Positions 24,971 through 63,417 are shown, counted from the first letter of the stretch. The stretch is 64,000 bases of DNA from Gnetum montanum (GCA_015680685.1 MNCI01002773.1:266010-330009), one strand, 5' to 3'. Made by a program: numbers and translations. The notes: generated by a model from the sequence alone, not told the origin.

Positions 24971-25039
24971 CTTTTCTACACAAAATAGGTGTAAAAGGGA
25001 GAGATACATGTGAGAAACGGTTGGAAAACAATAGGTTTT

Positions 25040-25545: not shown

Positions 25546-25710
25546 ATTTTGGGCTTTCAGCCTGCAGGGTTCCAGAGGAACCATCATAGCGACCAATCTG
25601 CACCACTTGATGCGTAGACAACCATAGGGATGTCACGTCTATGCTAGCAGGTTACTAGTGATGGGGTATAGACAGGTTGCAGGATTACCCATGGCACAGG
25701 GAGGAGACAC

Positions 25711-25738
25711 GAAGGTTCAAGCTCTCCTTCTAGTGCCA
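25711..25738 (-). promoter_or_regulatory. Primer binding site, tRNA-Asn(GTT) type, element 1
   Basis: Plus strand gaaggttcaagctctccttctagtgcca resembles the plant tRNA-Asn 3' end (GGAGGTTCRA.CCCTCCTTCTAGCGCCA, recalled). It sits 5 nt from the LTR. Confidence 0.8.
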
Positions 25739-25743
25739 AAAAC

Positions 25744-32249: not shown

Positions 32250-33092
32250 ATTGGCGGGCTTGATAATGCAAGGAAATGTTTTATCAAATGCTAAAGAGAA
32301 CTTTTGTATCTTGGAGATCGATTATTTCTGCTCATTTGTAGAACCAGCAGAGCGAGGAAGGTTTAAAACTTTATAGATCAATGGTAGAAGCTGGATTCAT
32401 TGCGAACACTGCAACATTCGGAGAGCTTCTCAGAGGCTGTGCCACTTTGCGTTTACTGGAAGAAGGGAAGCAGCTGCATGCTCATGTTGCAAAATCATGT
32501 GCAGAACTGAACTGTTTTTTGGGAAGTTCACTTCTGAGCATGTATGCAGGTTGTGGCTTAATTGAGGATGCTCTGATTGTTTTCAAGATGATTCATACCA
32601 AAACTGTTGAGTCATGGAATGCAATTATCTTGGGATTAGCTTATCATGGGTTAGGATCAAAGGTTCTGGAAATCTTTGCAGATATGCAGAAAGTAAAGGT
32701 GAAACCTAATGACTGTACTTTCAGCTGTGTGATGTTGGCTTGTGTGAATGCTGGGCTTGTCATACAGGGCATATCTATCTTTGAATCTATGGTGCCAAAA
32801 GCAGAGCATTATGCTCTGCTAATTGGCCTCAAGGGACGAGTAGGCAAGATTGAGGAAGTAGCAAGGATTATTAGAAGGGCAAAATGTGAGCCTGTTTCTC
32901 CTCTTTGGAGAGCCTTATTGTGTGCCTGTCGCAGTCATGGAAATGTCAGGATGGGTATAACAGCAGCTGAGAAAATCTTTGAGTTGGATCCAGAAAACCC
33001 AGCAACATATATGCTATTGTCAACCATATATGGTAATCAGGGATTTTTGCATGATGCAAAAAAGTTGAGGGTTGAGGGTATGAAAAAGGGAT
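32250..33092 (+). pseudogene. PLS-class pentatricopeptide repeat protein fragment with E domain
   Basis: L2/S2/P/E motifs (TFGELLRGCA...GKQLHAHV...SLLSMYAGCGLIEDALIVF...SWNAII...EHYALLI...WRALLCACRSHGNV...AAEKIFELDPENPATYMLLSTIY). Upstream there is a frameshift near 32283 and a TAG near 32339; the 3' end is cut at MKK by a retroelement fragment. Confidence 0.9.
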
Positions 33093-33700
33093 ACGAATCC
33101 AAAGAAAAATATCTTTGGGGTCAAATCAATAAGCTTGCTATGTCATATTCATCAAAGAGGAACAGTAATAGATTAAATGATAATTCAAGTAATCCAAAAC
33201 AAAGAACATCCAAATAATAAGAAATCATTAATAATAAGAAATCATTAGGCTCATTCACCAGAAAGATAACCCTTATAAGAAGATTTGTTCCTAAATTCAT
33301 AGAGCTAACTAAACCCTTACTTTTGATCCTGAAGAAACACGTGAAAGTCAGAAAGACTTCAAAGTTAGTAAGAGCATTAGAAAAGATTTAAGAGATAATA
33401 ATAGAAACACCATACTTAGTAAAGCCTAAATTGGAAGAATATTTCTGGCTATATTCTTTCACTTCCAATGATTCAATTACAGCAGTGTTAACTTAGAAAA
33501 GTTGAGAAGGAGAAAATGATATTGAGTGTTATGGTTATTAGTTAAAAGAATCAGAAAATAATTATTCTGAGCTCGAGAAGTAGGTATATGCTATTATTAG
33601 GACCTTAATGCATTTTAAGTATTATCTTCAAACTTCCAAAGTTCATATAGTGATAGTGGAACTGGTTGTAAGGCATATTGCTAAAAAATATGTTAGCTTA
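33093..33700 (+). mobile_element. Gypsy (Tat-like) RT C-terminus and RNase H fragment, strongly AT-drifted
   Basis: NPKKNIFGVKS..LLCHI; RRFVPKFIELTKPLLLILKK; TPYLVKPKLEEYFWLYSFTSNDSITAVLT; ESENNYSELEK*VYAII...HFKYYL. Confidence 0.8.
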
Positions 33701-40231: not shown

Positions 40232-41992
40232 TATCCCCATGACTAACTAAAATCTCAATTTACATGACACTATCTACTATGTGCATGAATTTGAAATGTC
40301 GCAATGTTTACAAAAATGATACAAGATATGACATGAAAACTTTAATAAAAAATTTTTGGTGAAGCTTGATGTAGCCTTATGTAGTTCCTGGTGGTAGTGG
40401 CTCCTCCATCGGTTGCTTCCCCTTGTCATCAAGCTTCTAAAAGTTGTATCGGTCTAGGAGTGCCTCAAGTTTCTCCTATTCCATTCTTGGGTAATGCATT
40501 GTCCATGCTTGTTGTGCAATGTGTGATGGAGTAGGTAGATCCCATGGGCATGATAGCTGTAGAAACATTTGATTCATCTTGACATACGAGGTTGTAAACT
40601 ACCTCCTATCCTCTTCAAATGCTTTGGCATTTTCACGTGATTCATGATAGTTAGTCAATCTTCTAGCTAGGTTTTCTACTACATCTTTCTGTCCTTGGTA
40701 GCTAGCCTTTATTACTTTCAATTTAGAGTTTTCCACTTGAAGTTTCTGTAAAGAATCTTTACAATTCGCAAACTCTTTCTTGTACAAGGCATATGTGGCT
40801 ACTACTTACTATTCTAGCTCATTTCTAGGCCTACCTATTGTTAACATGGCCAAGTTAGCATAATGGCGGTTAGCTAACCTCATGTACTCTCTTAGGTCCT
40901 CAATCTGTAGGTCTTTATTTTTCACCTCCACTTGGTGGATATGGGTGTAACTGTCCAGGATGAGTTGCCAGTCAGGATTCTTTGTTGATATGAAGCTAAT
41001 TTTGGCCTTTGCCATCTAGATCTCTTTTTCATTGATCTACTTGTATATGTCCATTTGATCATGGAAGTGTTTCTTGAGCCTTTCATGTTTCTTTGCCTCA
41101 TTTTTCCATGCACTTATTTCAATAGCTAACTTTTGATAGATAGCACATATCTCCCCATTGAGAGGGTTTGATTTTCTCATGTGAGGTGGTTGATATCTTG
41201 GTTGACCCTCACTAGTTATTCCCTTAACTAGTGAATGGTCTCCTCTAGGACGTTTTTCCACTTTTTCACAATGGTTAACCTCATATTATTATCAGCAAGT
41301 TATTTATTTTCCTCTTGGACAGTGGTAAGTGCATTAACATGTGCATACGTTTGTGCTTCTTCTATGGAGATATTTCATACTGCTTTCTCCTCCTCTATTA
41401 TCATCTGTTTAGTTTACTCAATCAAATGGTTCATTTGCTATATCCTAAATTTCTCTATCTTGTTGGGTACAATAAATTGTGTGGGATCTCTTCGTTCAAC
41501 TCTTAAGGCTATGAGCTCTTCTTGTAATTTCAGAATTTCATTTTTTGCATGCTCTGCTCTTATCTCTATCATGACTAGTTTTTATTTTGTAGTGATGAAC
41601 TAAGACTGTACTATAGTGACATCACTTGGGATATCGAAGAGTGTTATCATGACTTGTCCATTCTACAGTAGTCTATCAAGAACATCTTCATGGTCAGTTG
41701 GAGTCATTGAGGTTCTAGCTAACATTTGAGCATCTCTAGCTCCAATTAGATCTATCAATGACACAATAGGTATGTTGAAGAATTCCTTGATGTGATCAAT
41801 GATCACTTCTGCTGCTCTTGCTACATCTTGGTGTTACATCATCACAACAGTGGATCCATATTTAGTCTCAAGCATCACTTGGAATGATGTAGCATTCCTA
41901 GAGATTTGTTGTGGCCATTAGACCTCTCCTCCAAACTATAGTGAGATTTGTTGACTTGTTGGATTTTCTAAAACTATGGGTTGGATGGCACT
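40232..41992 (-). pseudogene. 3' extra ORF (coiled-coil rich) of the Athila-like host element, left part
   Basis: Chain of minus-strand ORFs 40599-41261, rich in K/E heptads, located just upstream of the PPT; interrupted by element 2. Confidence 0.6.
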
Positions 41993-43476
41993 TGTTGCAA
42001 CTAAGAATTTCCATCATTGGAAATACCAAAGATCCTTAGTGTAGCAATTTCCCAACCTTAAATCCCCAAGGCCTCCGTAGAAAAAATGGGATTTGAGGCA
42101 CCATGGCTAGTCCAACAAATCAACAAGGGACTTATGACATGAAAAACATAGAAATACAAATAGATCTAAATAATGCACAAAAAATAAATTAATATACCTT
42201 GTACAAAAAACCAAAAAATTAAAAATTTATTAATAAAAAATAAATAATAAGTTAGAGAAATGTGTATAGGTAGTGCCTAAGTAGGTAGCAAGGGGGGTTC
42301 ACTTGAATGGAGTTTAGGGTCCATTGAAGTCAGTGCAGTCAACTTCATAATCGAGATGTCCTACCACTCCCAATGCTATTGAACCTCTAGTGCTACAATC
42401 TTAGATATGCAATGTTGGCTACTATTGAGGGGTGAGAAAGGTGAAAAATTTGGATGCCAGTTTACTCCACGTTGGGGTTTGGAAATCCTAGAAGTGTAGT
42501 GTTGACATCAAAAATCCATAAATCTCAAGGCTATAATGCTTCCACATTTGGGTTCAAAAGAATGCAAGTATGGGAACTTTCAAGAGCTCTTAAGTGCTTG
42601 AGAATGCCCAAGTATGGAATTGTAGGAAATTTTGTATTGTGTGAAGTGCTAAACCTTGAAAAAATTCTAGAACCTATAAATGGTGTTGGAGGTTGATTTT
42701 TATAGGTTCTAGACCATGAATGGGGCTACAAAATGGCTATGATTTGTTTGCAAAATTGCTATAAACTGGATACAAATTGGCTGCCAAATTTAGATGAGAT
42801 GGGTGTCCAAATTTGGGTGGTAACTATAAATAGTAAGTGCTTCCCCCATGGCCATTCTATTTACTATAAATAGTAAGTAGGGCACACCTTCCACACTGGA
42901 GATGAATCTTCCATGTTGATCTCTCCACCATGCTTGCTAAAGTGGTTAGTCAATGTTGAAGTGCATGAAGGGATAAATTTTGGTTTTTGTGACTTCCATG
43001 TTGGGGGATGCAATTTTCAACCCTAAGGGTAAAGATTCCATGTTGGGGAGAAACTTCGACACTAATGGAAAAAGGTTTCCAGGCTATGCATGTAGTCTCC
43101 ACACTGAAGGAAGAAAGTTTCCAAAACTCCCATCCTTCCATGCTAGGGGTAGGTGAGATTTACCCCCTACATGTTTTTCCAGTGTAGAAAAGTGTATGCC
43201 CCTCATAAAAGCCATTAAATTTCCTTTTTTGGCATTCCAAAAGGCATTTTTGATCCCTCCAAGCCCAAATATAGACACTAGGTAACTTGTTTTACTTGGG
43301 GAATGAGGCTTTAACCACTTATGAGGCATTTTTCAATACCAAAAGTATAAATTATTGAAATTGTCCACTATGCATTAAAATCTTTACATTTACATTGATG
43401 TTTTACCTCAAGTTTCATGGGGTGAAAGATACATGATGAAAATTGACTATAAGATGCAAATTTTTGTGGTGTTTCA
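41993..43476 (-). repeat. 3' LTR of element 2 (1484 bp)
   Basis: Colinear with 61958-63417. Confidence 0.95.
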
Positions 43477-43726: not shown

Positions 43727-46700
43727 CTACATGTAGTATGGCTTTAGATATGAATGATTAATTGGATTGGCAAGATTATTCCCATCCATGTTGGCTATAA
43801 TAAATGCTCTATTCCCATAGGCTTTGGTGACAAGGAAGGGACCTTCCTAGTTGGTTGAGAATTTGTTCACATGCTTGTAGATGGTCTTGAGGACTAGGTC
43901 ACCCTCCTTGATCTTACGCATGTTCAAGTTATGGTGATGTTATCACTTTTTCCTCTCTTGATAGTGCTTGATTTAAGCAAGTGCTTGCATATGTTTCTCC
44001 TCCATCGAATCTAGGGTTTCTATCCACAACCTCTTATTCTGCTCATTTTTGATGAAGTTGGTCAAGTCTACTTGGAGTGATGGAACTTGCATTTCAAGAT
44101 GTAAACAAATTTCAGAACCATAAACCAGACTATAAGGGGTCATATCGGTTGTCATGTGATAGGTTGTTATGTATGCCCATAGTGCGTGGACAAGCCTCTC
44201 ATCCCACTTGCGCTTACTATTGTTGAGCATATTTTTGAGTAAGTTGATGATAACTTTGTTGTCGACTTCTACTTGTCCATTAGCTTGAGGGTAATATAGC
44301 GATAAGAAAGAATGTTTAATGCCTAGGTTGTGATAGAAATATTTTGTTTCATGGCTACTAAATTATGTTCTATTGTCTATAACTATGATCATAGGTGTAC
44401 CAAAATAGGCTACAATGTTATTTAAAATGAATTTGCAAACTTTTTTAGATGTAGTCTTTCTTAGGGGAGTAGCCTCAACCCACTTTGTAAAGTATTTAGT
44501 TACAATGATGATGAAGTTATGCCCTACTGGAGACTTAGGTGTTATAGGTATAATGATATCCAACCCCCATGATTGAAATGATCATGATATTTGAGTGGTG
44601 TGTAACTCAGTCAATGATATGTGTATAAGGTTGCTATATCATTGGCATGTGTCATAATGCTTATCCTTCTATAGGAAGTCATTTTTCATATGAGGCCAAT
44701 AGTAGCCTAATCATCTAATCTTAGCAGTCATATCTTTACATCCTATATGTCCTTCACAAATACCCTCATGAACCTTCTCTAGGATTATTCTAGCTTCAGT
44801 TTTACCTAAGCACTTTAGGAGTATGCCATCATAGGATCGTTGACATAGTGTGTTATCACCTACGATGACATATTGCTTCGATCACTTGTGTATGACATCC
44901 TCTTGAGTAGTAGTCAAGCCTTGTGAAGATTTACTATGCATAAGGTAAAATTTGATACCATCATACCACTCCCTAGTAGAAGAAGTATGGATGATGGCCA
45001 TAACGATATCCTCAATGTTCTGTGTGATGGGAGTAGCACAGTCCATGGTTAAGGTGGGCAACTTGCCAAACACATCTAGAGTCATACTAAGGGCACACAT
45101 CACAATTGCATCATTTATGGCATTCTCATTTTGGGGTATGTGTTGGATATCAACATCCATGAATTATTGAAACAACCACTTTCCTTGGTCATAGTAAGGT
45201 TGTAAGTGCTTAGCTTTGCATGCATAGACCTTGGTTACTTGGTTAACCATGAGTTGTGAATCACCTTTGATCGCTAGGCATCTAATTCCTAGATCATGAG
45301 CTACCATCATCCCTTTGATCTAAGCTTCATACTTCATAATGTTGTTGGTACATAGAAACTCAAAGCGAGAGGCAAAGGGTTGGATTTCACGAAATGGAAA
45401 TGTTATGATGGCAATGGCATTGGCCCTATGAGCAATTGAAGTTCCATCAAACTACATGACTACCTCATAGCCCTCAAGCACTTGGCTAACAACTTTAATA
45501 TTTTCATTAGGAAACTTAAGATCTATGGTTTCTTGGTCATTAACAAGTAAAACTGTGAGTTGTACAACTATAGCTTGACCTTTCATTGGGGATTGAAAGA
45601 CATAATGGAGGTTGAACTTTGTAGTTATGACTTTCCATCAAGATATATGGCTACTTTCATTGATATTAGTCATTATGGCTCTAAGTATGTTATCCTTGCA
45701 AATCACATTAACTTGGCTTCTAAAGAGGTAGTGTCTTCACTTCTTCAATGAAAAGACTAGTGTTAGACAATACTTCTCCACTTCAGTGTATTAGGTCTCA
45801 TGGCATACTAACACATGGCTAAGGTAGTATACAAGCATTTCTACTCTGTCATCATGTTTTTGACAGAGTAAAGAAGCAATGAATGTATCAGAGATGGAAA
45901 GATAGATGTAAAATGGTTTACCCTCTTGTGGAGGAAAAACTATCGATAGTTGTGTTAATTCTTACTTAAGGTTTTTAAAGGCCTCTTAGCATTGAACCAT
46001 CCACCCATAGTGAACTCCTTTCTTAATTAAGTGATGCATGGGTTGTAACTTATCCGTAAGCCTAGTGATAAGTCTGTGAATAAAATGTAATCTACCTTGT
46101 AATCCCCGAAGCTCTTTAGGTTGGTAGATGTTGCTAATTTTGATATGGCCATAATCTTATCAGGACTGACACAAATCCCTACTTTAGATACTACAAAGTT
46201 AAGCATCTTACCAGTCTTGACACCAAAGACACACTTCTTAGGATTGAGTATTTGAGGCATCATTTAAGCACAAGTTCTAGGTCATTAGCATGATCATTGG
46301 TCACTTTGGAATTAATGGCTATATCATCCATGTAATCATTAAGCAAACCTAGCATGTAGTCACTAAATATATAGTTCATGGCTTGTTGATAGATCACTCT
46401 AGTATTCTTAAGGCCAAATGACATCATATTATAGCAAAAGGTCCTTCATGGGGTCATGAAGGTCATGCTAAGTTGGTACTCTAGGTTGATCATAATTTGG
46501 TTATATCTCGAGAATCCATCCATAATGGACAACAAGGCATGTCTAGCTATAGTATTGATAAGTTGATCAATACTAGGCAAAATAAAGTCATCCTTGATAG
46601 TCACTTTGTTTTGGTCTTAAAAATCAATGCAAATATGGATACTCCTATTTTTCGTAGGGACTACCACTATGTTGGACACCCATTACATGTAGTTGATAGT

Positions 46701-47221
46701 TCTAATGAAACTATCTTGATAGAGCTTTAAGATCATCATGAATTTCCAAGGCCAAATCAAGTCTAATGTTGTGCACTTTTTTCTTAACTAGTCTAATGCT
46801 AGGGTCTAGTATGATGTTATGCTAGACTAAACATGAATCTAGGCCTCAAATGTCTTCATAGGCCTTAACATTGTAGGACCTTGGTGATGTCTTAAGCATA
46901 TTGAGGTTTGAGTGAAGAGCTTAGTTTAAGGGTTTTCTCCTTACCACTGTGTGTTGTGACTAGAACCTCAGCCAAAGAGTCTTCAATTATGTCACCTGCC
47001 TCTAAGTCAAGGGTGTTGACTAGGTTTTTAGGTCATTCTAGAGGTTTTTCTATAAAGGCTATGTGATCTACAAGACTCTCAGGCTCAAGATCTAGGCAAT
47101 CAAGGTTGATACATTGTTCAACATCACCATGAGATCCATGTAGACACAAAGGCAAACTAATTTTCTCTCGAGTACTCATACATTGATTATGCATATCAAC
47201 GAAAGGCATATTAAGTGGCAC
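43727..47221 (-). pseudogene. pol: Element 2 pol: RT, RNase H, aRH, integrase (decayed)
   Basis: LNPKKCVFGVKTGKML; FEFLCTNN..KYEA; GDSQLMV; DIIIPITPKSPVGHNFIIIVTKYFTKWVEA; WDERLVHALWAY...TPYSLVYGSE; ends LKPYYM*. Confidence 0.92.
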
Positions 47222-47999
47222 CTAGGTAAAAGTGAACAAATAATGCTAAAATGCTATAAAATTAAGAAAATACATGCAAATATAAGGAAAACAAGGCCAT
47301 CCAAGGTCATCAATAGGATGACAACAAGCAAAAAAAGTGCAATAAGCACCAAATAAAGTTTAGACCAAGGTTAAACCAAGTAAAGTATAAGGATCAAGAC
47401 TACAAATGGTCAACAAAGGCCATGAGTTTGCCAGTCTTAGGCCTTAGTGGGCCATGGTCACATGATGTTAAACAAGGGTTAGGAAAGATCAAACCCCACT
47501 ATTTGATACCATTGAAAGGCCAAAAAGAGGTAAATAAATTTATAATAAGAAAAATAAAGAGCATATAAGGTTTTATAAAGCCCATAGAAGGTCAACAATG
47601 AAAAATGCAACACCAGTCCAAAAATAAGCTAAAATACCATGTAATAAGGTAAAAAATCAAACAAAACAAGCTATATATGATAAAATTTACCTAACATAGG
47701 CCAAAAATGATTAATTTTTGCTAGTTTTAAGCCTTAGTGGGCCATGTTTTGAGGCTACAACAATGTTAGGTGGGTTTGGACATCAATTAGGACTATTTTT
47801 TAGCTATTTGGACTCAAAAATCAAGTGTTTTGAGGCTTCTATGCTAGGTTTAGCATATAAACATGGACCCTTAGCATGGTTTCAGGGTGCTTAGAGATAC
47901 AAAATCAAGGGTTCAAGACCTTCCCAAGGTAGCATAGGGTCAAATCCATCAAAATTGGGCACTTCGGAGGTTTGTAAAGGTCAAAAATCAAGTTCTAAA

Positions 48000-50660
48000 G
48001 CCTTTTTCCCCTTGTTTCAACAATAGCCAGCATGGAAGAAAAGGGGGCTTAATATGAAAAACCAAAACCTTAGCCAAAACAGGGTCAAATGAGGTCAAAC
48101 AAGTAGCTGGAACCCAAATCTAGAAGTTATGCATCCTCTAGCTTCATTTTGAGGCAGTTTGAGGCAAATTTGAGTGTCAAAACATGTCAAAATGGCATTC
48201 CCCATTTTTTTCATGTTGAGCATAGTATCCTCAATGTGGAAGAATGGGGAACAAATTTTTGTGAATTCAAAGTAACTTAGAAGCACTTTAATAGGTTTCT
48301 AGGCTTCTAGGGCTGTAGACTTTGATTTTACAAGTTTTTGGTTAATTTTGAGCATGTTTGAAGACTGTTTAAGGGTACTTAAGGTCTTCCCCCTTATTTC
48401 CATGTTGAGGAAGTTAATCTAGTGTGGAAGAATGGGGGAATGAATTTTGGAGTTGAATTAAGATCAAACAAGGAAAATCTCAAGGCTATGAGCTCCTAGG
48501 CTTATATGGCGTAGATCTTTGGCTTCCAAGAGTGTCATCTTGCAACCAAAAGTAAAAAAGTAGCTTTTTCGCCTTGTTTCCATGCTACCCACTATGGAAG
48601 GGGCCTCCTCTAGCTGGATGAACCAAGAACCTTAGGTCTAGGCCAATTTGAGTCACAATGGACCATGCAGTCAGCCTTCAGAGTTGCTAAGGCTAAGGGT
48701 TATGTCTCCATGTCAAAATCTAGTAGTTTTGAGTACTCTCAAGTGGTTTTTGAGCTTCTCCCTCTTTTTTCATGTTGAGGCTAGGGAGCTCAATGTGGAA
48801 GACTAGGGGGAAACCATTTTTTGACCATCTAGGATCAATTTCTTGAGGTTTGAAGGCTCTAATGACTGTTGACATGGTTCTAGAGTGCATGTGAGGTTAT
48901 TTGATGTTATTTTGAGGTGTTTAAGAGCTCTAAAAAAGTCTCCCCCTTGAGTTTCCATGCTAGGGATACTATGCTCAATGTGGAAAAGGGATCCCCTATA
49001 GGGAAGAATCATAAATCTTAGATCTGGGCTAGTTATGACCTTAATTAATTGTGCATGTATGCCTCTAGGATTACTGAGGTCAATGAATAGGGTTCGAAAT
49101 CAAGTTTGGCCAATTTGGAGATTTCCTAGATGGTTTTTGAGCTTCCCTCCAATTTTCCACACTAAGGATAGTATGCTCAAAATGAAATACTAAGGGGAAG
49201 AATCTTTTTGACTTTTTGCATTGTTTCTTATCATGCATGTAGGTCTCCAAGGTTGCTAGTGTTGATTGCTGCTTCCTAGTGTCAAAATTCAGTCATTTCA
49301 AGAGTTTTTGAGTTGTTTTGGGGCTCTCCCTTATTTTTCCACACTAAGGGAAAGTCTTTTTGGCCACTTATGATCAATTTTGATAGTCTTGAGGGTCTGA
49401 GGATGTGTAATTGAGGCTCTTAGACACACATAGGGCTTTTTGATGTTTGTTTGACATCGCTAGAGGTTATTTTAAAGTCTTCCAAAATTTCCTCCCTTTC
49501 TTCCATGTTGGGTAGCATGGAAGATGTGGCTCTTAGTGTGGATGAACTTAGGAACCCTAGTTTTTACCATTTTCCATCATCTTGGCTATGCATGCATGCT
49601 TTTAAGGTTACTGGCATTAACTATTGATACATGATGTCCAAATTTTTCTTTTTCAAGTGTTATTAAGTAATTTTTAGGCTTTCCTCACTTTTTCCATGTT
49701 GGGGCTTTCTTGCTTAGCATGGAAGATTGGGGAGAAGGGCGTTTTAGCTTTTATGGTTAAATTAGACTATGCATGAGTGTCCATAGGATTTTTGGTGTTG
49801 GACATCAGTGTCTAAGGTTAAAATATGGTCATTTTGAAGGATGTTAGAGGGTTTTTAGGCTTTTCCCTTCTATCCACATTGAAGATTGTAGGCTCAACAT
49901 GGAAGAGGTATCCCTCAATCAAAAAAGTCAGATCTAGGCTAGATCAACAGCCAATCGACCATGCATGTCAACCTCCAGGGTTATTGAGGTTAACAATCAA
50001 TACTCAATGTCAAGATCTATCAATTTGAAGGCTTCTAAGTGCCTCATGAAATCTCCCCCTTTCTTCCATGCTAGGCATGATGGCCCCAACATGGATGAGA
50101 GGGGGATGGTATTTTTATGCCATATTTGACTACTTTTGGAACATTTAGGATCCCCAAAGGATCCTAGCAGAGTCTAGGGGTCACCATGCATTAAGAAATA
50201 GTTACTAGGAAGTCAATTTAGGTTATTTTTTGCCTTCCCCCATCCATCCATGTTGAGGGTGAGGTGGTCAACATGGATGAAGCCTCCCTCAGCATTGAAA
50301 CACAAAATCCCAAGGTTTTGACCAATTCCAACTTGGTTTGATGAGTTTTTGGTTTTGCCAGTGATGCTCAAAGGGATTCTAGGTCATGCAGGGTCCACAT
50401 TAAAGTTAAACTTGTGCTAGATGGGTATTTGCATAGGGATAGGTGTTACCCTTCTCCTTCTACTTTAGGCATTGTTTCCCTAGCATGGAAATCCATGGAA
50501 TCTAGCTTTGTTCATGTCTCATCCACTTTTGAGAACCTAAGGTTGAAAAAGGAAAGTTTTGGTTACCAAGAAAAGGGAAAAATAGTTGTATTTTAATGAT
50601 TTTATGAAATGGGAGGCATGTTTCCACACTGGACATGGTGTCCTTAGCATGGATGCATGG
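48000..50660. repeat. Array of about 15 hairpin motifs at about 187-bp spacing
   Basis: CCC..TTCCAYRYTG-N10-15-CARYRTGGAA..GGGG starts near 48006, 48200, 48388, 48570, 48758, 48940, 49143, 49326, 49492, 49681, 49863, 50054, 50236, 50450 and 50621. Confidence 0.8.
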
Positions 50661-51110
50661 GAGTTAAGGTTGCAATATAGTTTTAAGTGTTAAAACTGGA
50701 AAAAAGCTCAACGTTGGGGCAATTTCTAGTCAAAAGAGAAGGCATAGGGTGGGGCCCATAATATAAAAATTTAAAATTTTGAAAAGTGAAGTTGTTTCCC
50801 ATCCAAAACTAATGTGACTATACTTTCCCCTTTTTTCACTTTAGTGCACATAGAGTTATGGTGCATTGAATTAGTAGCTGGGGTTTTAAGGTGTGTGTTT
50901 AGGTTTTAGATGTGCTTTTATTATGAAATCTCACAAGTTTTCATTACAATTGTCATTCTAAATCAATGACACATTGGAGGAGAGCTCTAGTAGAAATTTT
51001 TGTTGCAAAGAACACCAATCTTCAGCCTGGAAGACTTCCATCTTCCTTGAACTAAGAGTAGAAAACCTATTTCTCCATAGATTTTAGCAATTCTCAATGT
51101 TGAGCCTACC

Positions 51111-54100
51111 ATGGCACCAAAGCAATGTGGAGGAAAGAATAGAAATCCTACAATCTAGAAGATGGATGAGCATTTTAGAGAGTTATCAGAGGTTCCTAGG
51201 CCTATCACCATCCATGCCTCAGCCATCACCACTCCTAGGTAGGTATTTTTACCTATTTTTGCCTTTGTTTTCTATGGTTTTTCTAGTCTTGTTTTCCATG
51301 TGTTGGAGCCATATTTTTCTAGATCAACTTTGGTTAAGGGATTAAAATGGAATTATGATGAAATCCCACCTTCTACTTTGGCCATTTCCACATAGATCCA
51401 TGGTTCTTTCATTGCTTTAGCTTTTGTAGATTTGATTTTAAAAATAGGGCTTGCTATTTTCATGCTTTTTTCCCAAAATATTTGGATAGGGCCGTTTTTT
51501 TAGATCCAGGTCTTATGATTTCTTAAAATTAAATTTTAACAAAATACTACCCCACAATTTTGGTGTGAATTTTAGTGAGTTTCAATCATTTTGGCTATTT
51601 CGATTGTTTCCATGGCTATATGAAATCTAGATTTTGAGGTTTTTGAAGTTTTGGCATGAAAAAGTGAGTAATGTTTTGTATTGTTTCTTGGGATAACAAC
51701 TACATATTTGTGAAATTGAATGTCATTTTTTGTAGCCCTTCTTTTAAGCTTTCTAATGGCTATTTTCTCATTTAATTTCACCTTGAAATGACAATTATGG
51801 CTATTTTCCTAATGTTGCACAGTTAGGTATCTCATGCCGTTTTTATAATTTCATATAATCTTGCAGCTTTTCTCTAAGGAAAATGCAAAGATTTTGGATA
51901 TTTATAGTTATCACTAAGTAGGTTTTGGCTTCAGGTTTCCAACGGAGGTGAAATCACTCTAATTGGACTTGAAATGAATTTTCTACAAATTTTTTACTAA
52001 GCATGTATAATAAGGATGTTTGTGCCATTTTTGAATTATTGTCCAAATTGATGAAATTTTCCTGCATAAACGCCAAAGGTTTTAAATTTTTTCTAAGCAT
52101 GGATCTATAGGGCTCCATTTAAGCTTTCAAATAGTGGTGGAATCACTCCATTTGGAGCTCAAATGAATTTTTGCAAATGTGTACCAACCCTAAGTGAAAA
52201 AGGTTAATGGTGATGGCTAAATTTTGGCTATGCTTTATGGAGATATGGTTATGCATCTTTGGTTATAGTGATCATGGCCATAAGATTCATAATTTTGAGA
52301 TTCTATTTATGGAAAAATCACTAAAATCAATGTTCAAATGATTTTTTAATGAATTTTTTGGTTGTGGTTGTGTGAACAAGGAAAAATCATGGTTGTAGCA
52401 CATTACCCAATTGGAAACAAAAGTGGTTGATATGTATAGCTTATGCTTTTCTTTTGTCAACATGTAAAATGAATGCATGATTTTTTTAAGACAAGTAAAA
52501 GCGTTTTTTATTTTTAACAAGCTTTTACAATGGCTACATGGTTTTTTCTACATGTATGATGCTTTTACTATGGCTTAGATGTTTATTCCAAGTTTATGCA
52601 TGCTTTGCATAATTTAGATGTTTTTTTTTCTAAACTTATGTTTTCTTTTTTCTAAATTTATGCATAATTCAGATGTTTTTTCCAAATTTATGCATGCTTT
52701 GCATAATTTAGATGTTTTTCTAAACTTATGCTTGCTTTTTCCTAAATTTACACATAATGTAGATGCTATTTTCTAAATTTATGCATAACTTAGACCAAGT
52801 TTTAGTTTTAGCTATAATGTTTTGGCTGTGATATTTTGGTTATGGTAATAATTCTTTGATGGAATTTTTAAAGTTAATTTAGACAAACACATTAGAGCTT
52901 TTTACATAGGCTAATTTCACCTCAGACTAGATGTGTTTTCCAAAATTTGCTAAGTAATTCTATAATGTAAGGCTATGCAAGGTTGTAATAATGTTTTATC
53001 ATGAATTCCTTAAGCTAATTTAGATAAACACCTTAGAGTTTTTTACATAGGCTAATTTCACCTATGACCAAATATTTTTTCTAAATATTCTAAGTAATTC
53101 CAATTGGTCACAATGTTTTTGATTTACTTCATGTAGGATCTTTTTAAGGCCTATCTTCATCATCGTGGACTTGGTGGGTATCTTGTGCTACATTGGTCAT
53201 CCAATTACCAACACTCCGCTACATGACATACATTTTGGAAAGCTCTTATTATGGTTGTAGCCAAGGGTAAGGGAATTCCTTGCCTACCTTCTTAAGAACT
53301 TTTGTGTGATGCTGTGATCATACTTGTCTACGAATATAGCTGAGGTCATAGTGGAGACCTTGTTACATTAGGCATCTAGCTTGATCATCAGATTCATTAT
53401 TAACAAGCTACCCATTAAGATAGTAGGCGGACTAGTAGATGCCACAAGCCCATGTTACCTTATAGAGATCTAGATGATGCCAAAGTATAGTTGGTATAAT
53501 GTTGAAAATACTCTAATGGTGGCACATAGAGCACACACATTATTCTAGAACCCACCTAGCACCATGTATCATCTACAAGGATGAGCATGGTTATTATAAT
53601 GCTTTTATGTTTTTTCTTAATTATCTTTCCTAATTTCATCAATTTTTCAAATTTCTTGCAGAAACAAGGTCAATGATCAAGGTTTGGTCATTAATGATCA
53701 AATATTGGTAGTGGCTCAAACTACTTTGATGAATTCACTAAGAGTCCTCAAATTAGAATTGCCATGTATCAATAGTTAAGATGGGACTTTAATGCATACA
53801 CTTCAAGATTCAACCTTGTACATGAAGTGTAAGGATGATAGAATGATGCACAGCTAGTGGGTAGATGTTGATAGCATGGATCAAACCCTTGTAGCTAGGA
53901 CCTCCACTCAAACCACACTAAAGAAGAAAATGAAAGGTAAACATAAAGGTTATAGCTTTAGTGTTTTATGGCTATAACTTTGAGTGTTTTATTGATTTTC
54001 TTGTTTGTTAAAATTGTTCATGCTGATGCTAAACTTTGGTTATTTCTTTGCAGGACCTTCCACCTCGATTGATGTCACTATAGCACTTTTAGGTTCATGT

Positions 54101-56729
54101 CATGAGGATACCCTCATCTTGAAGTATGGTGAGGTGACATCAGCATAGGAATGGATAAAGGGATAGACACCTTGGTACATTCAAGAAAACATCTAGTGTG
54201 TAGGTTTTCTTGATGTATTTATGGTACATATCCCTTCTGTTCCTGTGTGAAGATGTTGCATGTCATAAACTCCTTCAATGAGAAGGTTGGTCATTTTAGC
54301 ACCATCATCCAAGATCTGAAGCTAAAAATGGATGTTGGTGTTGGCCTCTTTTGTAACTTGTTTGATGTTCCTTCTAATGGGGAAAGGGTTCCTACTAGGA
54401 TAGTAAGGAAAGTAAGGCATCGTGACGAAGTTCTGGAGTGCCTTGGTTCCAACATTGGCCACTTTGGAATTTTAATGGATAGCTTCATGAACCCTAATGC
54501 AATGGAATCATATCCTTTATTCAGGTCTTATGTGTTTCCTAAACTATTATCACAAAAGGAGGTAATCAGCTTAGCACATTGGTGGACCTTTAAGACGGTC
54601 TTGATGGAGAGCATTAGATTTGATTGGGCGATTACTTTGGCTACTGGGCTTTAAGAGGAGATCCTTAGACTCTATGTTGATACCTCTATGATAATCCATA
54701 TGCACTTTGCATTTTTTTCAAGTTATCTAAAGAGGTTTGCAAATTTTCTAGTGGTGTATAGGAATGGACAATGGGTTTTCCAAGACCCAAGTCAACTTTC
54801 TAGGCCCTGGATAAAGCACATTTATGTAATAGTGCATGCCTAGAACCCACTAGAGGAGATGGATGATACATTATCCATTACCACTAAGAATCTTGATGTT
54901 AGGTAGTATGAGTCTCTTGACAATACTGAGGATGATGAGCCTCTCACATTTCTTGCTAGTATCTAGGATGCCAGATGATGATGTATGAAGGCCAAATGGG
55001 TAGCTAGAGAGAAACTCAAGAGGTCTATGAAGGAGGCACCCCCAACATCAAATCAACCTACTTCAAAGAAGCTTAAGTTCAAGCTTAGGTCATCACAATA
55101 GGTAGTTACAGGTATGCTTTGTTTGGATATTTCATGTTTTAAAGCTTATTGATGCTTTATGGTTTGATGTATTAATCTGTTTTCTATGTGCTATGGTTGT
55201 AGACAAATGTTAGGCTATGGTAGCCCAAGCTATCGTGGAGGTAGAACAAAGACATGTAGAAGAGGCACTTCTAAAGTAACCTGTGTTTGAAGGCTTTGTT
55301 GATGTAGATATAGATGATCTAGATACCTTGTTTGGTGAGGTGGTATTGGGTAAATCCCCCGTCATCATCCCTAAGGAGGAAGAGGAAGAGAAGCTAGGTA
55401 TGCCCATGCCTTAATATTTTTGTTATATCTTATTGTTTATCTTTGGTTATCATCCTAACATTTGGATGATTATTATGCTTATAATAGTTTCTAAACCACT
55501 AGCACAAGCTCCCATACCTAGGTTTCATGTGAAACCATGCGTAGAGACTCTAAACAAAGTGGAGTTCATGCATGGGATGGCTAAGGACATCATTGATCAA
55601 TTGCATCAGGTTACACTTGAGATAGGTAAGGATTTTATTTTATATGCTTTAGTCATAGGCTATGGTTGCGTTATGGCTATCTTAGGTTATGCATTATGCT
55701 TTATGGATATATTTTATGCATGTGTAGTGCCTTCTGTGGAATGGGACCGTAGCAGAGACATGGAGATAGACTCCTTATGTAAGCTTCCCTCTAATGTATC
55801 TAGTATACCTATGAAGTTGTACGAGACTACTACTGCTTTAGCAATGTTATGTGCAAAAACTTCATGGGAGTTAGAGGGGTCCAACAAATCCCTATGGAAA
55901 GAAGTTGTAGTCTTAAGGAAAAAGACTCAATGGGAGGAGGATACAAATAGAGATCTCTGAGATTTTAAGGCCTTTGTGGAAGCCCACGTGGCTAACCTAG
56001 GAAAGTTTTGAACTAGGGAGATCATGTGGGCCTACTATTGGCATGTTGTTCAAGACAAAGTAGCAATTCTACAAGAAATGGTGGAACAACATATGCAGAT
56101 GGACCTTATCTCCTAGAAGATTGAGGACTAGAAGAATTACTACACTTGGGTCTTAGAGTGGAGCAAGAAACAAAAGGTCCACAAGCGATAGTATAAGGAA
56201 GATTGTGGGGCCTACCTAAAGTGACTTAAGGAGGAGTTTATTGAATGATGTGAGAGAGAGTTTTTCATCCAAGGGATCCAGGTGGAGAGTGATTATCAAT
56301 TTTTTGAAAGTAATCTCACAGTGAAGCAATCCCCTACTCTTTAGATTACCATTTTTGAAGGTGAGACCTCTACTGATATTACTACCCAGAAGCTTCCTGC
56401 TTGGACTATTATAGATAGGTCTAGCATCCTTTCTAGCATTGATCTTGGGGATGTTGACTTGGCCAACATGATAGAGGACTAGATCCTTAATCATTTTGAG
56501 GAAGGTCTTCCACTTCTACCCTTGGAGGTCATGGAGTAAGAATACCCATAGGTTTGATATGTTTTAGTTTTGAGTTTAAGTATGGCTTTGATTTTGAATA
56601 TGGGTTATTAATTGGCTATACATTATTGCATTTTAGGCCTCAGGAGACATTGGCATCCCTAGTGGTGAGGGTGAGAATGACCCACCACTTCCTCCTCCGG
56701 ATGGCACTCAGCAACCTCCATTAGTTTAG
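51111..56729 (+). pseudogene. Antisense 8-exon accessory gene of element 2 (FCP1/NIF-like HAD domain, plant-transposon ORF-like domain, coiled coil)
   Basis: ACCATGGC start (MAPK). Inferred exons 51111-51238, 53137-53589, 53662-53936, 54054-55111, 55203-55397, 55488-55625, 55728-56551, 56637-56729, with GT-AG T-rich introns. Exon 2 reads RPIFIIVDLVGILC...*PRVREFLAYLLKNFCVML*SYLS...YNVENTLMVAHRAHTLF*NPP. The exon 2/3 junction is the least certain. Confidence 0.82.
52530..53100. repeat. Tandem repeats in intron 1 of the antisense gene
   Basis: atgcataatttagatgttttttctaaattt units at 52530-52800, plus a duplicated block taatttagaYaaacac..agagYtttttacataggctaatttcacc near 52875 and 53016. Confidence 0.75.
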
Positions 56730-57399
56730 CTTGTTGGCTATTTTTTTTATTTTAATGTTGATGGCTATGATTAGCCAAGACTACGTTATAGATGGTTGTT
56801 ATTCTTTGACATTCTTGTAATAAAGTGTGGCCATGGCTTATTTATGTTATGGACATTTTAACTTTAAGTTTAAATTTTGGTTTTATTTTTGGCTATATGT
56901 ATTTATCGTTGTAGTAAACATTGTCAATGGCTATGTTGACGTTTTGGTTCTAAATAGAAAATCAATATGATCAAAGAAATATAATAAAAGGGATGTTTGA
57001 TAGTTTTAGGCCATCATGGGCATAGGTTATATTTTGTTGTATGGTTATGACTACATTGCCACTTTAAGATCCCAGTGGACCATGGTTTAATTGTGGCTAG
57101 TTTTGCTAGTTTTAGGCCATGATTGGCCATGTTGTGTTGTTTTGGTAGATGTTTCCAATTTAAGGCCATGGTGGGTCATCATGCCAATTTCAGGTCTTAG
57201 TAGACCAGATATGAAAAATAAGTATATTCATAAGGCTTTTTCGATGTTTGTAATATAAGTAAAAATAAAGAGAGGTTGTAGCAAATAGGTAAAAATGCAA
57301 ACAAACTTAGGCTACATACATAGGCTACATGCATAAAGAGTAAAACAAAAAATGCATAAAAAGATATAATAAATTATCAAAGAAAAGTAAGGCTATATG

Positions 57400-60300
57400 G
57401 CTATCAATGCATCTGGTCATAGGGGCATGGGAAGGTTAAGGTAAACCTCACTTATGTAGATTCTTCCTAATCTTTGTAAGATTAGGATGTAATTAAGGCC
57501 TACTCTGCACAAGCTTCTATTTCCCATCTTCTTCACTTATGATGTTAAAAGGAAGTTCATCCCATAATGTATCCCATTGCTTATAATTGTCATTGTTGGC
57601 TTTCTTGGATTGTTTCTCTTCATGGCTGGGAGCTACTTCTTGAAGCTCAACTTCAAACCCTTATTCTATGTCTATGTTATTGATAGTCATAGGAACCGCG
57701 TTATCACCATGAATGATGATTTCACCAACTTCGTAAAGAAGGTGAATTTCATGATGGATGGGAGAGAACACAACTGATAATTGAGCCAACCAAAGGCTTT
57801 CTAGGATCAAGTTGAATCTTGGAATCTCTTCCACCATCAAGAAGTTGGCAGTTATAGAGAATTGCTTTCCTACTACAAAATCCAAGGAGATGGACCCCTT
57901 GATGGCAACCCTCAATCCATTGAAGGACTTAATAGCTATAGTGGTTGTAGATTGTATTTTCTTAGTTAAGCCCAAGCATCCAACAATGGTGCATGGGATG
58001 ATATTGGTTGTAGATCTCTTATCAACATGCATTCCATAGATTTTAAACTATTCTATGCATATGGTTATGAATAGAGGGGTTGTAGTTACTTTTCCATTTT
58101 GGGGATTAATGTTAATTTTTCTATTGTGAAATGTTAAGGGTATTGACATCTCCCCCCTTGATGAGGGAGCAATCATCACTACATGGATGGACTCCTCATT
58201 AGCTAAGATATCCTCACTAATGGGTATGAAAGTTAACATTTTGATTAGCACCTCAGGATGTGTGGTAGAAGTCATGATCAGGTCATACAAGCTTAAGGTT
58301 GTATTCTTTTGCTTGAGGGTTTGCCTGACATGGTCCATTGCACTAAGGAATTTTTTATCATTGATCATGGGCTTGTCACCCCGGTTGTGCTTTACTTCCC
58401 CCATGTGTCTCAAAATGCAAACTTTAGCTTTAGGTTGTGGCTATTGTGACTCTTTCTCTTTGTTTTGGTTGTGGGTTTTTGTGTCCTCCTATGTCCTTTT
58501 TGTTGGAGTGGGTTGAGCATAGGAGGTCATGGGTATAGTCAAAATGGAAGTGGGCTTTAGTGGATCCACTTCCTTTTGTGCCTCCATCTACTTGTCACCC
58601 TTGTTATGAGGTTTTTGCTTATGCTTCTTCCTCTATTTGGCTGAAATGTTTTGCTTGTTAGCTATTGGCTATGAGGAAGAGGCAATAGCATTAGCTACCA
58701 CAATAGGTCATTGTGATGTTGGTTGGGCTACGACTACTTGGATTATATTGGGTTGGGGGCCCATGATGACAAAATATTCCTTGGGAAATACTCATGATAG
58801 TGCTTTTATGATAAAAGGGGTTCTTGAGCTATGGGAATCTAAAGAAGACCTTTCATTGTAGAGGGGTACTTGAATCATGAATGGTTCTCTTGCAGGTCTC
58901 TAATCATCATCAATGTTGGATGCTGAAATAACATAAGGGTTGTCATTAGCATTCAATAGGTCCTTGTAGGCTTGCATTGATTTTTTTTGTGGTTGAACTA
59001 TATTGGAAGCATCTAAGACTAGCTTTCCCTATCTATTATCCTTTGCAGGTCATCCTTAAGCATAAGGTAGAATTCTATGTCATGACCAAGCAATTGATGA
59101 TAATGGAAGACATGGTCTAGCTTGAAGTATCTAGGAAACTAGGGATCATCCTTTGTTGCCCAAGTGGGGTCCTTGGCTATTTCACATAGCTGCTCATGTT
59201 TCATTCAAGTAGCTTCAATTATTTGTTTGTGTTACATGCGTCCACTTTTTAATAGTTGGTCTAATAGCTCTAATGGTTTTATAGGGAAGGTAGTGTATTT
59301 GAACTTGTCCGTTTGTTCAAAGTTAGGTTTGGTTGTTATTGATGTAGTGGCCCTAGAGGTCAATGGTTGGTTATTGTGGTTATTAGTAGTAGCCTTGGGT
59401 GGATTGGACTTCAAACCTTGGTTTGTAGTCTTTGTTTCTCTTGTCATAGTTGCTATGGTCATGCTATTTTGTTTTCTCTTTTCTTTGTATCTCTAAGAGT
59501 GTTGATTTTTATATGCTATATAGGCTAGATCATGACTAGCCTTTGCAACATCCTCTATATTTTTAGTTTGAGAGAATGCCTAGCTAAGGGATTGTGGATC
59601 AAGGTAGTAGAGTTTAGACTTGATGAAGTCATTAACTACTCCCTTAAATATGGTTAAAAGATGAGTTTTGACTATGGGCTATGGTATTTCATTGAGTAGT
59701 CTATTCCATCTCTAGATGAACTTATATATGGATTCTAAGAGCCCTTGCTTGACCTTCATGAGTTGATCAAGAATTGTGTTAGGCTTCAAGTTATACTTGA
59801 AGTAGTTGACAAACTAGGCTGCTAAGTCCTCTAAAGAGGATATGGATCCTTTGGGTAATGCATAGTACTAATCAATTTCTTTCCTAGTTAAATACATAGG
59901 GAAAATCCTCATGATGATATGAGGCCATGGTTGTAAGAGTAAACATTTAGATTGAAAGGTAATAAGATCACATTAGGATCACCTTCTCTATTATATTTGC
60001 TAAATTGGGAAATAGGAACACTAGGAGGAAATGTCAAGGGTGTGACTATAGAACTAATGGGATCATCCTGGTAGAAGTTCATAATCTTGATAGTTTGTGA
60101 AGTAGAGGCCTTAAGCCTCTTCAACTTCTCCATGGGATCCTGAATCATCCAAAAAGCTTGATCCAATCCCTGTGGTGGCCCTGTTTGCTATGGAGTTTGC
60201 AGATATGGCTATGGCATTTGTTGCGAGGCATGTGGCCTTGCTATGGGTTCCAAGATGGAAGAAAGAGGTTGTGTCATGGTCATAGCTTGTGGACCAAACA

Positions 60301-61079
60301 AAGAAAAAGAGATATATGCTAGTACTTGAGGCATAAATAGGATAAAGGGGTGTGTGATCCTTGTGTTGCTTAGGGTCCCATGGTGGATCCCACGTGTGTA
60401 ATTAATGAAGTTTTGGTGGTAAAAACCATTGTTGATAGTTTTATATATCGAGACTATGTGGTAAATGGCATAGATAGGTTATGGATCATAGTTTGTGGCA
60501 TCGATTGAGTTTGATGCATGTCTATGATTGATGTGGGATCAGCTATGATAAGGTAGGAAGGAATGGAAGATGATGGCACCATGCCCATGGGAAAATAAAA
60601 GCATTATAGGAAGGTGCTATGACCTGGGAAGTGTTTGTTGGAACAGTCCTCCTAAGATGTTTTGAGACTTAGATTCTACCTTAAATTCATCCTTCTCTAT
60701 TGTTCCTTAGAGCCATGCTTGTCATCTTCCTCTTCCATGGCAATCAATTAGGCTAGGATGCTAGCATAAATGTCATTAAGAGAAATTTGGTCATACAAGG
60801 AAGGGATGTACTCCTTTCCACCCTTATGTATGAGCTCAAACTCCCTCTTGGGCTCTACTTCCATACATGGAATTAGCATGTTTGCATGTATTTAGCATAA
60901 ATGAAGTTATAACAATATTCATTTATAGCTGCAAAATTAGGACTATCCCCTCTAGCCCTCAAAGATTGCCTACACTAAATGATCACATAATCTTTGGGGT
61001 CATAGACCCTCATGGCTTGTTGGCTAGGATCTTTGCTAGTGAGGGTGAAGAGAAATTTGGTGGACTATTGGAAAGACAT
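57400..61079 (-). pseudogene. gag: Element 2 gag and protease
   Basis: PISQFSKYNREGDP; KYTTFPIKPLELLDQLLKSG; TTLSLYDLIMTST; MHVDKRSTTNIIP...FNLILESLWL...FSPIHH; colinear with element 1. Ends approximate. Confidence 0.88.
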
Positions 61080-61949: not shown

Positions 61950-61957
61950 AGAAAAAT

Positions 61958-63417
61958 TGTTGCAATTGAGAATTTTGGTTATTGGAAAAACCAAAGATTC
62001 TTAGTGCAGTAGTTCTCCAACCCCAAATCCTCAAGGCCTCCATAGGAAAAATGAGATTTGAGGCACCATGGCCAGTTTGGTAGATCAACTAGGAACTTAT
62101 GAAATGCAAAATGTAGAAATACAAAAAGATTTATATAATGCACAGAAAATAAGTTAATATACCTTGCATACAAAACCCAAATCTTAAAAACTTTATTGAG
62201 AGAAAATAATAAATAATAAGTTAGAGAAATGTGTATAGGAAATGCTTGAGTGGGCAACAAGGGAGGTTCACTTAGGTAGGGCTTTAGGATCCATTGATGT
62301 TAATGAAGTCATCTCCACAATCCATATGTCCTATCACTCCCAATGCTATCGAACCTCCGATGCTACAATCTAAAATCTGGAATGTTGTCTACTACTAGGA
62401 GGGGGTGAGAAACGTGGAAAATTTGGATGTTAAATTGCTCCATTTTGGGGTTTGGGAATCCTAGAAGTGTAGTGTTGACATAAAAAAATCAACAAATCTT
62501 AAGGCTATAATGCTTCCATGTTGGGGCTCAAGAGAATGCAAGTATGGGAACTTACAAGAGCTCTTGAGTGCTTGAAAATGCCCAAGTATGGAATTGTAGG
62601 AAGTTTTGTATTGTGTGAAGTGCTAAACCTTGAAAAAATTCTAGAACCTATAAATTATGTTGGAGGTTGGTTTTTATAGGTATTGGGCCATGAATGGGGC
62701 TGCAAAATGGCTACAAATTGGTTGTAAAATGGCTACAAATTGGCTGTCAAATTTTGGTGAGATGGGTGCCTAAATTTGGGGGGTTGCTATACATAGTAAG
62801 TTCTTTCCCCATGGCCACTCCATTTACTATAAATAGTAACCAAGGCACACCTTCTATGCTGGAGATGAATTTTCCATGTTGAGCTCTCCACCATGCCTAC
62901 TGAAGTGGCTACTCAATGTTGAAGTGCATGAAGTGATGAATTTTAGTTTTTATGGCTTCCATGTTGGGGGATGAAATTTTCAACACTAGGTATGAAGACT
63001 CTATGCTGAGGGATGAAGGTTTCCAGGCTATGCATATAGTCTCCACATTGCAGGAAGAAAGTTTCCAAAACTCCCATCCTTCCATGTTGGGGGTAGATGA
63101 GATTTATCCCCCTTCATGTGTTTCTAGAATGGAAAAGTGTATACCCCTGATAAAACCCATCAAATTGTCTTTTTGGCATTCCAAAGGGTATTTTTGATCC
63201 CCAATCCCAAATATAGATAATAGGTGACTTTTTTCACTTGGGAAATAAGGCTTTGACCACTTTTGAGGCATTTTTCAGCCCCAAAAGTATAAAGTATGTG
63301 AAATTACCCACTGTGTTACAATCTTTACATTTACAATGAATTTTTGCCTCACGTCTCATGGGGTAAAAGCTACATGATGAAAATTGACTATAAGATGCAA
63401 ACTTTTGTGGTGTTTCA
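61958..63417 (-). repeat. 5' LTR of element 2 (1460 bp)
   Basis: Colinear with 41993-43476 and adjacent to the PBS. Confidence 0.95.

Follow-up and report, generated by a model that had tools for sequence, protein, structure and literature searches.

Why should the strand opposite gag and pol of a plant retrotransposon carry what looks like a multi-exon gene, and does that gene belong to the element? The locus that raises this question lies in Gnetum montanum nuclear DNA, in a 64,000-nucleotide stretch (GCA_015680685.1 MNCI01002773.1:266010-330009; hereafter the window, with positions counted from its first letter) that holds two complete Ty3/gypsy retrotransposons with long terminal repeats (LTRs); both lie on the minus strand and are here called Element 1 (E1) and Element 2 (E2). 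In E2, a gene-like unit occupies 51111-56729 on the plus strand, opposite gag-pol, in the spacer between gag-protease (gag-PR) and reverse transcriptase (RT). A sequence-only reading of the window had taken this unit for a spliceable gene with an FCP1/NIF domain, of the kind that acts on the C-terminal domain (CTD) of RNA polymerase II, kept as a retrotransposon accessory gene. What our analysis favors, with a probability of roughly 0.7, is an accessory gene of a family of large Tat/Ogre-like Ty3/gypsy elements, present here as a decayed copy and with a NIF-like start to its predicted protein.

The location first proposed for the unit held, with minus-strand protease (57664-58047) on one side and RT (~45989-46724) on the other. 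So did its outline, put at about 1050 codons with a strong start context and seven GT-AG introns: the start codon at 51111 stands in an ACCATGG context (ACCATGGCACCAAAG, 51108-51122), and eight exon-like blocks, every one of them preceded by YAG and followed by GT, are separated by seven GT-AG introns and total 3164 nt, or ~1055 codons. The word "spliceable" did not survive for this copy, which is dead: ~33 stops interrupt its reading frame, and the frame shifts at least once (near 54243). The blocks of the E2 unit are as follows:

51111-51238, + strand: exon 1, with its ATG in ACCATGG and 1 in-frame stop
53137-53589, + strand: exon 2, candidate NIF/FCP1-like HAD region, with 6 in-frame stops
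53662-53936, + strand: exon 3, with 2 in-frame stops
54054-55111, + strand: exon 4, large central domain, with ~11 stops, one frameshift near 54243 and a basic patch at its end
55203-55397, + strand: exon 5, acidic linker
55488-55625, + strand: exon 6, 46 codons, stop-free in E1 and E2, with 49% amino acid identity between them
55728-56551, + strand: exon 7, charged, heptad-like C-terminal region, ending in an in-frame TAG common to E1
56637-56729, + strand: putative exon 8 or 3' untranslated region (UTR) segment, resembling E1 20735-20797 (..G.PSG..E.D..)

The presence of the gene in other members of the family had been suggested as a check, and E1 carries the cassette. When the two spacers were compared by tblastx, colinear plus-strand similarity was found in the exons only, with summed E values down to 2e-66; the introns and the remaining spacer gave no matches except for a short boundary motif.

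16393-20797, + strand: E1 copy of the antisense gene, also broken, in the same place in the element and in the same orientation
16393-16465, 17357-18003, 18103-19154, 19217-19510, 19594-19734, 19824-20649 and 20735-20797, + strand: E1 blocks, from splice-site reading
E1 17352-17408 with E2 53132-53188, + strand: tblastx match, colinear
E1 18512-19102 with E2 54466-55056, + strand: tblastx match, colinear
E1 19632-19754 with E2 55523-55645, + strand: tblastx match, colinear
E1 19845-20234 with E2 55748-56137, + strand: tblastx match, colinear
E1 20251-20622 with E2 56150-56521, + strand: tblastx match, colinear

At the nucleotide level the cassettes were only 45-61% identical; exon 2 of E2 was homologous to E1 17352-17557, with 58% amino acid identity over motif I (see below) and 61% nucleotide identity over 218 bp. 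Canonical splice sites fell at homologous codons in the two copies, and the phase matched at introns 1, 3, 4, 5, and 6: intron 1 was in phase 2, before R-V/I-..-L-K/R-P-I, and introns 3, 4, 5, and 6 were in phase 1. The position of intron 7 was common to both. Intron 2 was not assessable in E1, because an inverted duplicate (17642-17694 / 17718-17770) occupies the region. There, a 53-nt segment of exon 2/3 (17642-17694) recurs in inverted form, 96% complementary, at 17718-17770, with single Ns at 17723 and 17771; the duplicate probably reflects an assembly error or a minor rearrangement. Intron 1 of E1 holds a short tandem array at 16847-17188, with units of ~51 and 28 bp (GCTATGCTACG...).

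The two copies also agree at the 3' end of the gene. An in-frame TAG stands directly before the last donor in both (E2 56549-56551, E1 20647-20649), and the blocks after the last intron are alike (E1 ..GTGPSGTRDEDIG.., E2 ..DIGIPSGEGEND..), although joining them would need phase 0. The protein may stop with exon 7, which would place the last intron in the 3' UTR; alternatively, the same codon may have decayed in E1 and E2. Since the TAG precedes the last donor in E1 and E2 alike, exon 8 may be 3' UTR.

Differences between the copies followed the codon. In the plus frame of the aligned E1/E2 blocks, Nei-Gojobori estimates were 0.44 for nonsynonymous (pN) and 0.81 for synonymous (pS) differences, whereas in the five other frames of the same blocks pN was higher (0.46-0.54) and pS lower (0.41-0.73). 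Identity was ~0.49-0.95 at codon positions 1 and 2 and 0.21-0.44 per block at position 3 (0.27-0.33 in the three longest blocks), with third-position identity near random in all blocks but exon 6. This pattern indicates that the gene was under purifying selection in the past, while the E1 and E2 lineages diverged. Its exons have nevertheless diverged ~1.5-2x faster than gag and pol, with ~30% amino acid identity overall between E1 and E2 versus 47-62% for gag and pol. Because two complete elements share the place, the orientation, the intron positions and phases, and the codon periodicity of the cassette, the antisense gene is best read, in line with the sequence-only reading, as a family-level accessory gene and not a private insertion.

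What might the protein have been? Stop-free pieces of the antisense gene were searched exon by exon, ~50 of them against Pfam. One piece of E1 (17470-17592, 41 residues, FREGVREFLEFLLRHFSVIVWSQ...; FREGVREFLEFLLRHFSVIVWSQLLTKIAAILIEMLLPEAN) matched NIF (PF03031) with an E value of 3.1e-4, or ~0.015 when corrected for ~50 pieces, and a score of 20.9 bits versus a gathering score of 21.8; the match covers profile positions 40-77 of 160, which is the motif II region, and no other E1 piece matched Pfam NIF. In E2, the three exon 2 motifs on which the domain had been proposed were present in the order given for them (53152-53187, 53261-53320, and 53492-53557), with motif II followed by YNVENTLMVAH..NPP. 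Motif I reads IFIIVDLVGILC (IIVDLVGIL) in E2 and ILIMIELVGVLC (IMIELVGVL) in E1, ~28 residues upstream of the NIF match. Motif II reads PRVREFLAYLLKNFCVML*S (VML*S) in E2 and VIVWSQ in E1, and the hydrophobic strand of the motif IV region reads MLVLDLG in E1, which has the Asp, and LMVAHR in E2; in both motifs residues are partly lost. In both copies the three succeed one another as HAD motifs I, II, and IV do, and at fitting distances. The catalytic form of motif I, DxDx(T/V), was seen in neither: the second Asp is replaced by Val in both copies and the first by Glu in E1. On these grounds the N-terminal domain is likely to be NIF/FCP1-like. If that assignment is right, the Val that both lineages have in place of the second Asp of DxDx(T/V) makes the domain probably a binding module or a non-catalytic pseudo-phosphatase, a view drawn from two dead copies.

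The remainder of the predicted protein resembled nothing that was searched. For exon 4, a word-based protein search with a 146-residue piece found no relative, ESM Atlas gave no usable match, and an AlphaFold model of the piece was unusable (pLDDT 40). No piece of E1 or E2 matched Pfam PMD (PF10536) at E values up to 10, and no antisense-gene piece matched Pfam Transposase_28. Two exon 4 motifs, LF.VP.DG..V and Y.W...L, may be PMD-like; no tool result bears this out, and we treat the resemblance as a lead only. Two bacterial repeat proteins returned by an exon 4 profile search were rejected as spurious, sharing only "LYSVPxDGS", as was a single 1.2-kb contig (L001) from a metagenome scan, which matched through the seeded 8-mer only. 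A basic patch closes exon 4 in both copies (SKKLKFKLR in E2, KSKLQRKKYR in E1) and is a possible nuclear localization signal; it is followed by the acidic exon 5 and, after exon 6, by a charged, heptad-like exon 7.

The elements that house the two cassettes, and the parts of E2 on either side of its cassette, are as follows:

8182-27996, - strand: E1, complete, 19.8 kb, with 2.29-kb LTRs 86% identical and target-site duplication (TSD) TCACT
41993-63417, - strand: E2, complete Ty3/gypsy element, 21.4 kb, with TG..CA LTRs and 5-bp TSD GCACT
41992-43476 and 61957-63417, - strand: LTR pair of E2, ~1.5 kb each, 83% identical
43976-47222, - strand: part 2 of E2 pol, with RT, RNase H, and integrase remnants in stop-free pieces, opened by an acceptor-like site at ~47222
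~45989-46724, - strand: E2 RT, in open-frame pieces
57664-60400, - strand: E2 gag and protease remnants, 47-53% identical to E1 gag-PR in amino acids
57664-58047, - strand: E2 protease remnant, in open-frame pieces

In minus-strand order, Pfam identified Retrotrans_gag, gag-asp_proteas (a weak retropepsin match), RVT_1, RT_RNaseH_2, and rve in E1, with which E2 is colinear (pol ~65% identical in nucleotides and 52-62% in amino acids; gag-PR 47-53% in amino acids). The gag of E1 had no relative in a protein database search, and the best database relatives of an E1 RT piece, Persea americana proteins among them, reached at most 55% identity. After RT_RNaseH_2, the E1 piece 13811-14074 contains a TNNVAEYE-like motif at the site expected for a second, archaeal-type RNase H; Pfam gave only a chance-level Hyr1 match there (E 0.1). 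The interval from integrase to LTR is short (~0.5 kb in E2, ~1.9 kb in E1). From their sequences, a Tat lineage is plausible for the elements. The gag and pol of E1 and E2 are broken like their antisense genes, so the breakage of the latter would reflect the age of the insertions. Elsewhere in the window, 328 Ns of an assembly gap lie just left of E1 (7394-7721), several open reading frame (ORF) fragments at 2661-3870 (+ strand) resemble non-LTR (LINE) reverse transcriptase, and a 291-codon open frame between E1 and E2 (32342-33214, + strand), with repeats like those of pentatricopeptide repeat (PPR) proteins and an E-type tail, is probably a host gene.

The spacer between gag-PR and RT is noncoding in the sense direction and runs from ~21331 to 15852 in E1 (5.5 kb) and from ~57660 to 47180 in E2 (10.5 kb). 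It holds several repeat arrays:

48000-50660, no strand assigned: palindromic motif array (TTCCATGYTRRG...CTCAAYATGGAA), repeat families D1 and D2 and inverted pairs I1-I6
47427-47746, + strand: AGGYC-N6-GRCC array on the RT side of E2, repeat family D5
57001-57219, + strand: AGGYC-N6-GRCC array on the protease side of E2, by motif count
15858-16004 and 20962-21070: AGGYC-N6-GRCC arrays of E1, by motif count

The palindromic array, found in E2 only, consists of at least 10 repeats at a spacing of ~180-200 bp just upstream of the antisense ATG and makes up much of the extra spacer length of that element. The AGGYC-N6-GRCC motif occurs 10 times in the window versus 0.75 expected, with 9 of the 10 on the plus strand; its short arrays border the antisense cassette on both sides in E1 and E2, and it recurs at 43678 and 24888, near LTR-internal junctions. 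On the minus strand, a pyrimidine-rich tract followed by YAG|GTRYCACTT opens the RT frame in both elements (E1 ~15817, E2 ~47222), and the conservation of this acceptor-like site suggests an Ogre-type giant sense intron that would enclose the antisense gene.

Six raw-read RNA runs from the same species were aligned to E2 51050-56800 at 80% likeness, and only 52-225 reads per run mapped. Since most of these were <90% alike and only partly aligned, they derive from other copies. In run X1, first-mate-minus pairs, from reads of diverged relatives, outnumbered the others by ~2:1, and three oligo-dT runs were balanced; the excess would fit plus-strand RNA if the X1 library was dUTP-stranded. A loose end of 6 reads at 55612 in run X4, considered as an exon 6-7 junction, was rejected, as the frame was not kept. 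The E2 copy is not detectably expressed, an observation that says nothing firm about the family.

How else might the cassette be explained? That there is no gene here, only ORF fragments and GT-AG pairs fallen together by chance in an AT-rich spacer, would account for the many stops and for an E2 copy without a database homologue, yet it leaves the exon-limited, colinear protein similarity to E1 and the codon-periodic signal unaccounted for and is scarcely credible. The 11-kb gap between protease and RT and the short motif arrays on both flanks might instead recall an independent nested insertion, of a mobile element or gene fragment, into one retrotransposon copy. This too is very improbable: a second element, at ~35% nucleotide divergence, has the same cassette at the same site, and at 45-61% nucleotide identity the two are not one recent cassette; the flanking motif also occurs at other element junctions; and neither an LTR or terminal inverted repeat (TIR) pair nor a TSD was found around the cassette, although the sequence-only reading had pointed to such boundaries as the mark of a nested insertion. 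A host gene transduced once into an ancestral element and carried since then as a neutral passenger is improbable as well, if less so. Both copies are heavily broken, the gene has evolved faster than gag and pol, and the reads aligned to E2 gave no sign of expression, all of which would suit a passenger. Such a passenger would, however, lose its frame, whereas here third codon positions are saturated with first and second positions conserved between long-split lineages, the introns have retained their positions and phases, and exon 6 remains unbroken in E1 and E2 alike; the gag and pol of the same copies, moreover, are broken too, which points to insertion age.

A different challenge concerns the domain and leaves the gene in place. 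The gene may be real and family-wide and its NIF likeness due to chance, in which case it would be a known Tat extra ORF (PMD or PMD with coiled coil), relocated and over-diverged. The possibly PMD-like motifs of exon 4 would, as a lead only, point in that direction. PMD and PMD-coiled-coil extra ORFs are known in Tat elements (PMC4408406). The sole profile match to NIF is, besides, subthreshold. Set against these points, no piece came up with Pfam PMD even at the loosest cutoff used, the NIF match falls exactly on motif II at a corrected E value of ~0.015, and in both copies motif I and the hhhhD strand stand where the order and spacing of the family would place them; we regard this explanation as unlikely, though it deserves to be kept in mind.

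Several results weigh against the reading that we prefer, a decayed family accessory gene with a NIF-like start. The NIF score is below the Pfam gathering threshold and concerns 41 residues; none of 10 stop-free E2 pieces matched Pfam, NIF included; in the PDB, sequence queries by the NIF-like piece and by a two-row profile brought up nothing or chance-level coronavirus nsp12; and NCBIfam gave no match. The FCP1/NIF domain claimed at the outset is thus only weakly supported, by its motif order and by the subthreshold Pfam match of E1, and drew nothing relevant from Pfam for the E2 pieces or from the PDB and NCBIfam searches. An E1+E2 profile of exon 4, run exhaustively against 1.84 billion representatives, found no homologue. 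No splice joints were reported across E2 51050-56800 in the six RNA runs, read coverage of E2 intron 1 was about equal to that of the exons, and a sense-strand donor after the protease, common to E1 and E2, could not be placed. The blocks used in the codon test were picked by tblastx, which biases them toward the chosen frame; this bias is not the whole story, because DNA that is 45-61% identical would be undetectable without protein-level constraint. Finally, the direct comparison is one of two copies, E1 and E2.

If the preferred reading is correct, the life of the gene might run as follows. The genomic RNA would be the complementary strand, so the splice sites of the gene would never be read in the replication cycle and its introns would persist; the logic of the earlier argument, that antisense orientation shields the introns from being spliced out of genomic RNA, is sound. 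The gene would be driven by a promoter of internal origin, at the RT end of the spacer, and its spliced mRNA would yield a protein of ~1050 residues, while the sense strand would remove or bypass the whole cassette, as in an Ogre-type split pol. The predicted protein would open with a NIF/FCP1-like HAD domain and continue with a large orphan domain, the basic patch, a linker of acidic character, and, toward the C terminus, a charged region. With low confidence, we propose that it may have acted as a nuclear factor aiding the element's own transcription or countering host silencing. In a bolder version, which we consider doubtful, a spliced gene lying antisense inside a pol intron would encode one protein that combines a CTD-phosphatase-like domain devoid of catalysis with a PMD-like chromatin module and with a coiled coil, and that engages RNA polymerase II or host silencing; it would be a parallel to, and possibly the source of, the host pairing of PMD with (pseudo)phosphatase in MAIN/MAIL1 with PP7L.

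Almost none of the extra ORFs of plant LTR retrotransposons have a recognizable biochemical domain. An antisense multi-exon gene with a CTD-phosphatase-related domain that has lost a catalytic residue would, if true, provide a testable hypothesis of how a giant retrotransposon meets host transcription or silencing. It would also be a natural example of antisense placement in a retroelement shielding introns from loss.

Extra ORFs of Tat-lineage Ty3/gypsy elements were reportedly described by Steinbauerova et al. in 2011. Those of Tat elements encode PMD, PMD with coiled coil, or Tr28 with coiled coil; the sense ones sit upstream of gag and the antisense ones between pol and the 3' LTR, in elements in which gag-PR is set apart from pol (Ustyantsev et al. 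2015, PMC4408406). Like them, the gene of E1 and E2 appears to be a lineage-wide accessory gene of a large non-chromovirus gypsy element, is antisense (as is sometimes the case in Tat), and has a charged C-terminal part. Unlike them, it is placed between protease and RT, contains some seven introns, begins in a NIF-like way, and was negative for Pfam PMD and Transposase_28.

The additional ORFs (aORFs) of Retand, Grande, and RIRE2 are mostly TRP28 (Vicient & Casacuberta 2020, PMC7264820; Vicient 2025 Retand survey, PMC11963269) and have no clear similarity to other proteins (PMC7264820). They share with the present gene conserved antisense coding inside a plant LTR retrotransposon, tandem arrays nearby, and a proposed regulatory or nuclear role; they have no phosphatase-like domain, whereas the E1/E2 gene is NIF-like in its start, and it does not fall among these aORFs. 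To the NIF/FCP1/SCP/CPL proteins (PF03031, HAD superfamily) the gene is linked by a motif II region that matches the profile and by motifs I, II, and IV that come in a fitting order and at fitting distances. It differs from them in having Val in place of the second Asp, in scoring under the cutoff, in joining the domain to a large C-terminal part that is unrelated, and in being transposon-borne.

The split pol of Ogre, with an intron between protease and RT, is said to have been described by Neumann et al. in 2003 and Steinbauerova et al. in 2008, and to our knowledge that intron has not been described as holding a gene. In the main text of a screen of noncanonical domains in the LTR retrotransposons of 121 angiosperm genomes, Ogre is given a putative intron between its gag-PR and pol parts (PMC9289625). 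Both Ogre and the elements analyzed here have gag-PR and RT-RNase H-integrase set apart by a noncoding stretch, with a conserved acceptor-like site before RT in ours. The difference lies in the spacer, which here is 5.5-10.5 kb long and contains an antisense multi-exon gene; the sense intron is itself putative, being read from sequence alone. Among retroviruses, spliced antisense genes are known, such as HBZ of HTLV-1 (PMC7264820). Like HBZ, the present gene would be an antisense protein gene of a retroelement, driven from a promoter of its own and spliced (both putative here), with a presumed regulatory role; the proteins are unrelated, the host element here is a plant retrotransposon, and the gene is placed within pol and not at the 3' end.

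The domains named in the main text of the 121-genome screen are PMD, G-patch, AIR1, DUF1409, YgdH, L26, B3, ArgoL2, and 2-ODD (PMC9289625). A NIF domain in retrotransposons goes unreported in the aORF reviews (PMC7264820, PMC11963269), the Tat survey (PMC4408406), and the main text of that screen (PMC9289625), and a full-text literature search for FCP1 homology in retrotransposons found nothing related. Extra ORFs of Tat/Ogre-like elements are thus already known; what appears to be new in E1 and E2 is the location inside the pol split, the antisense seven-intron architecture, and, probably, the domain.

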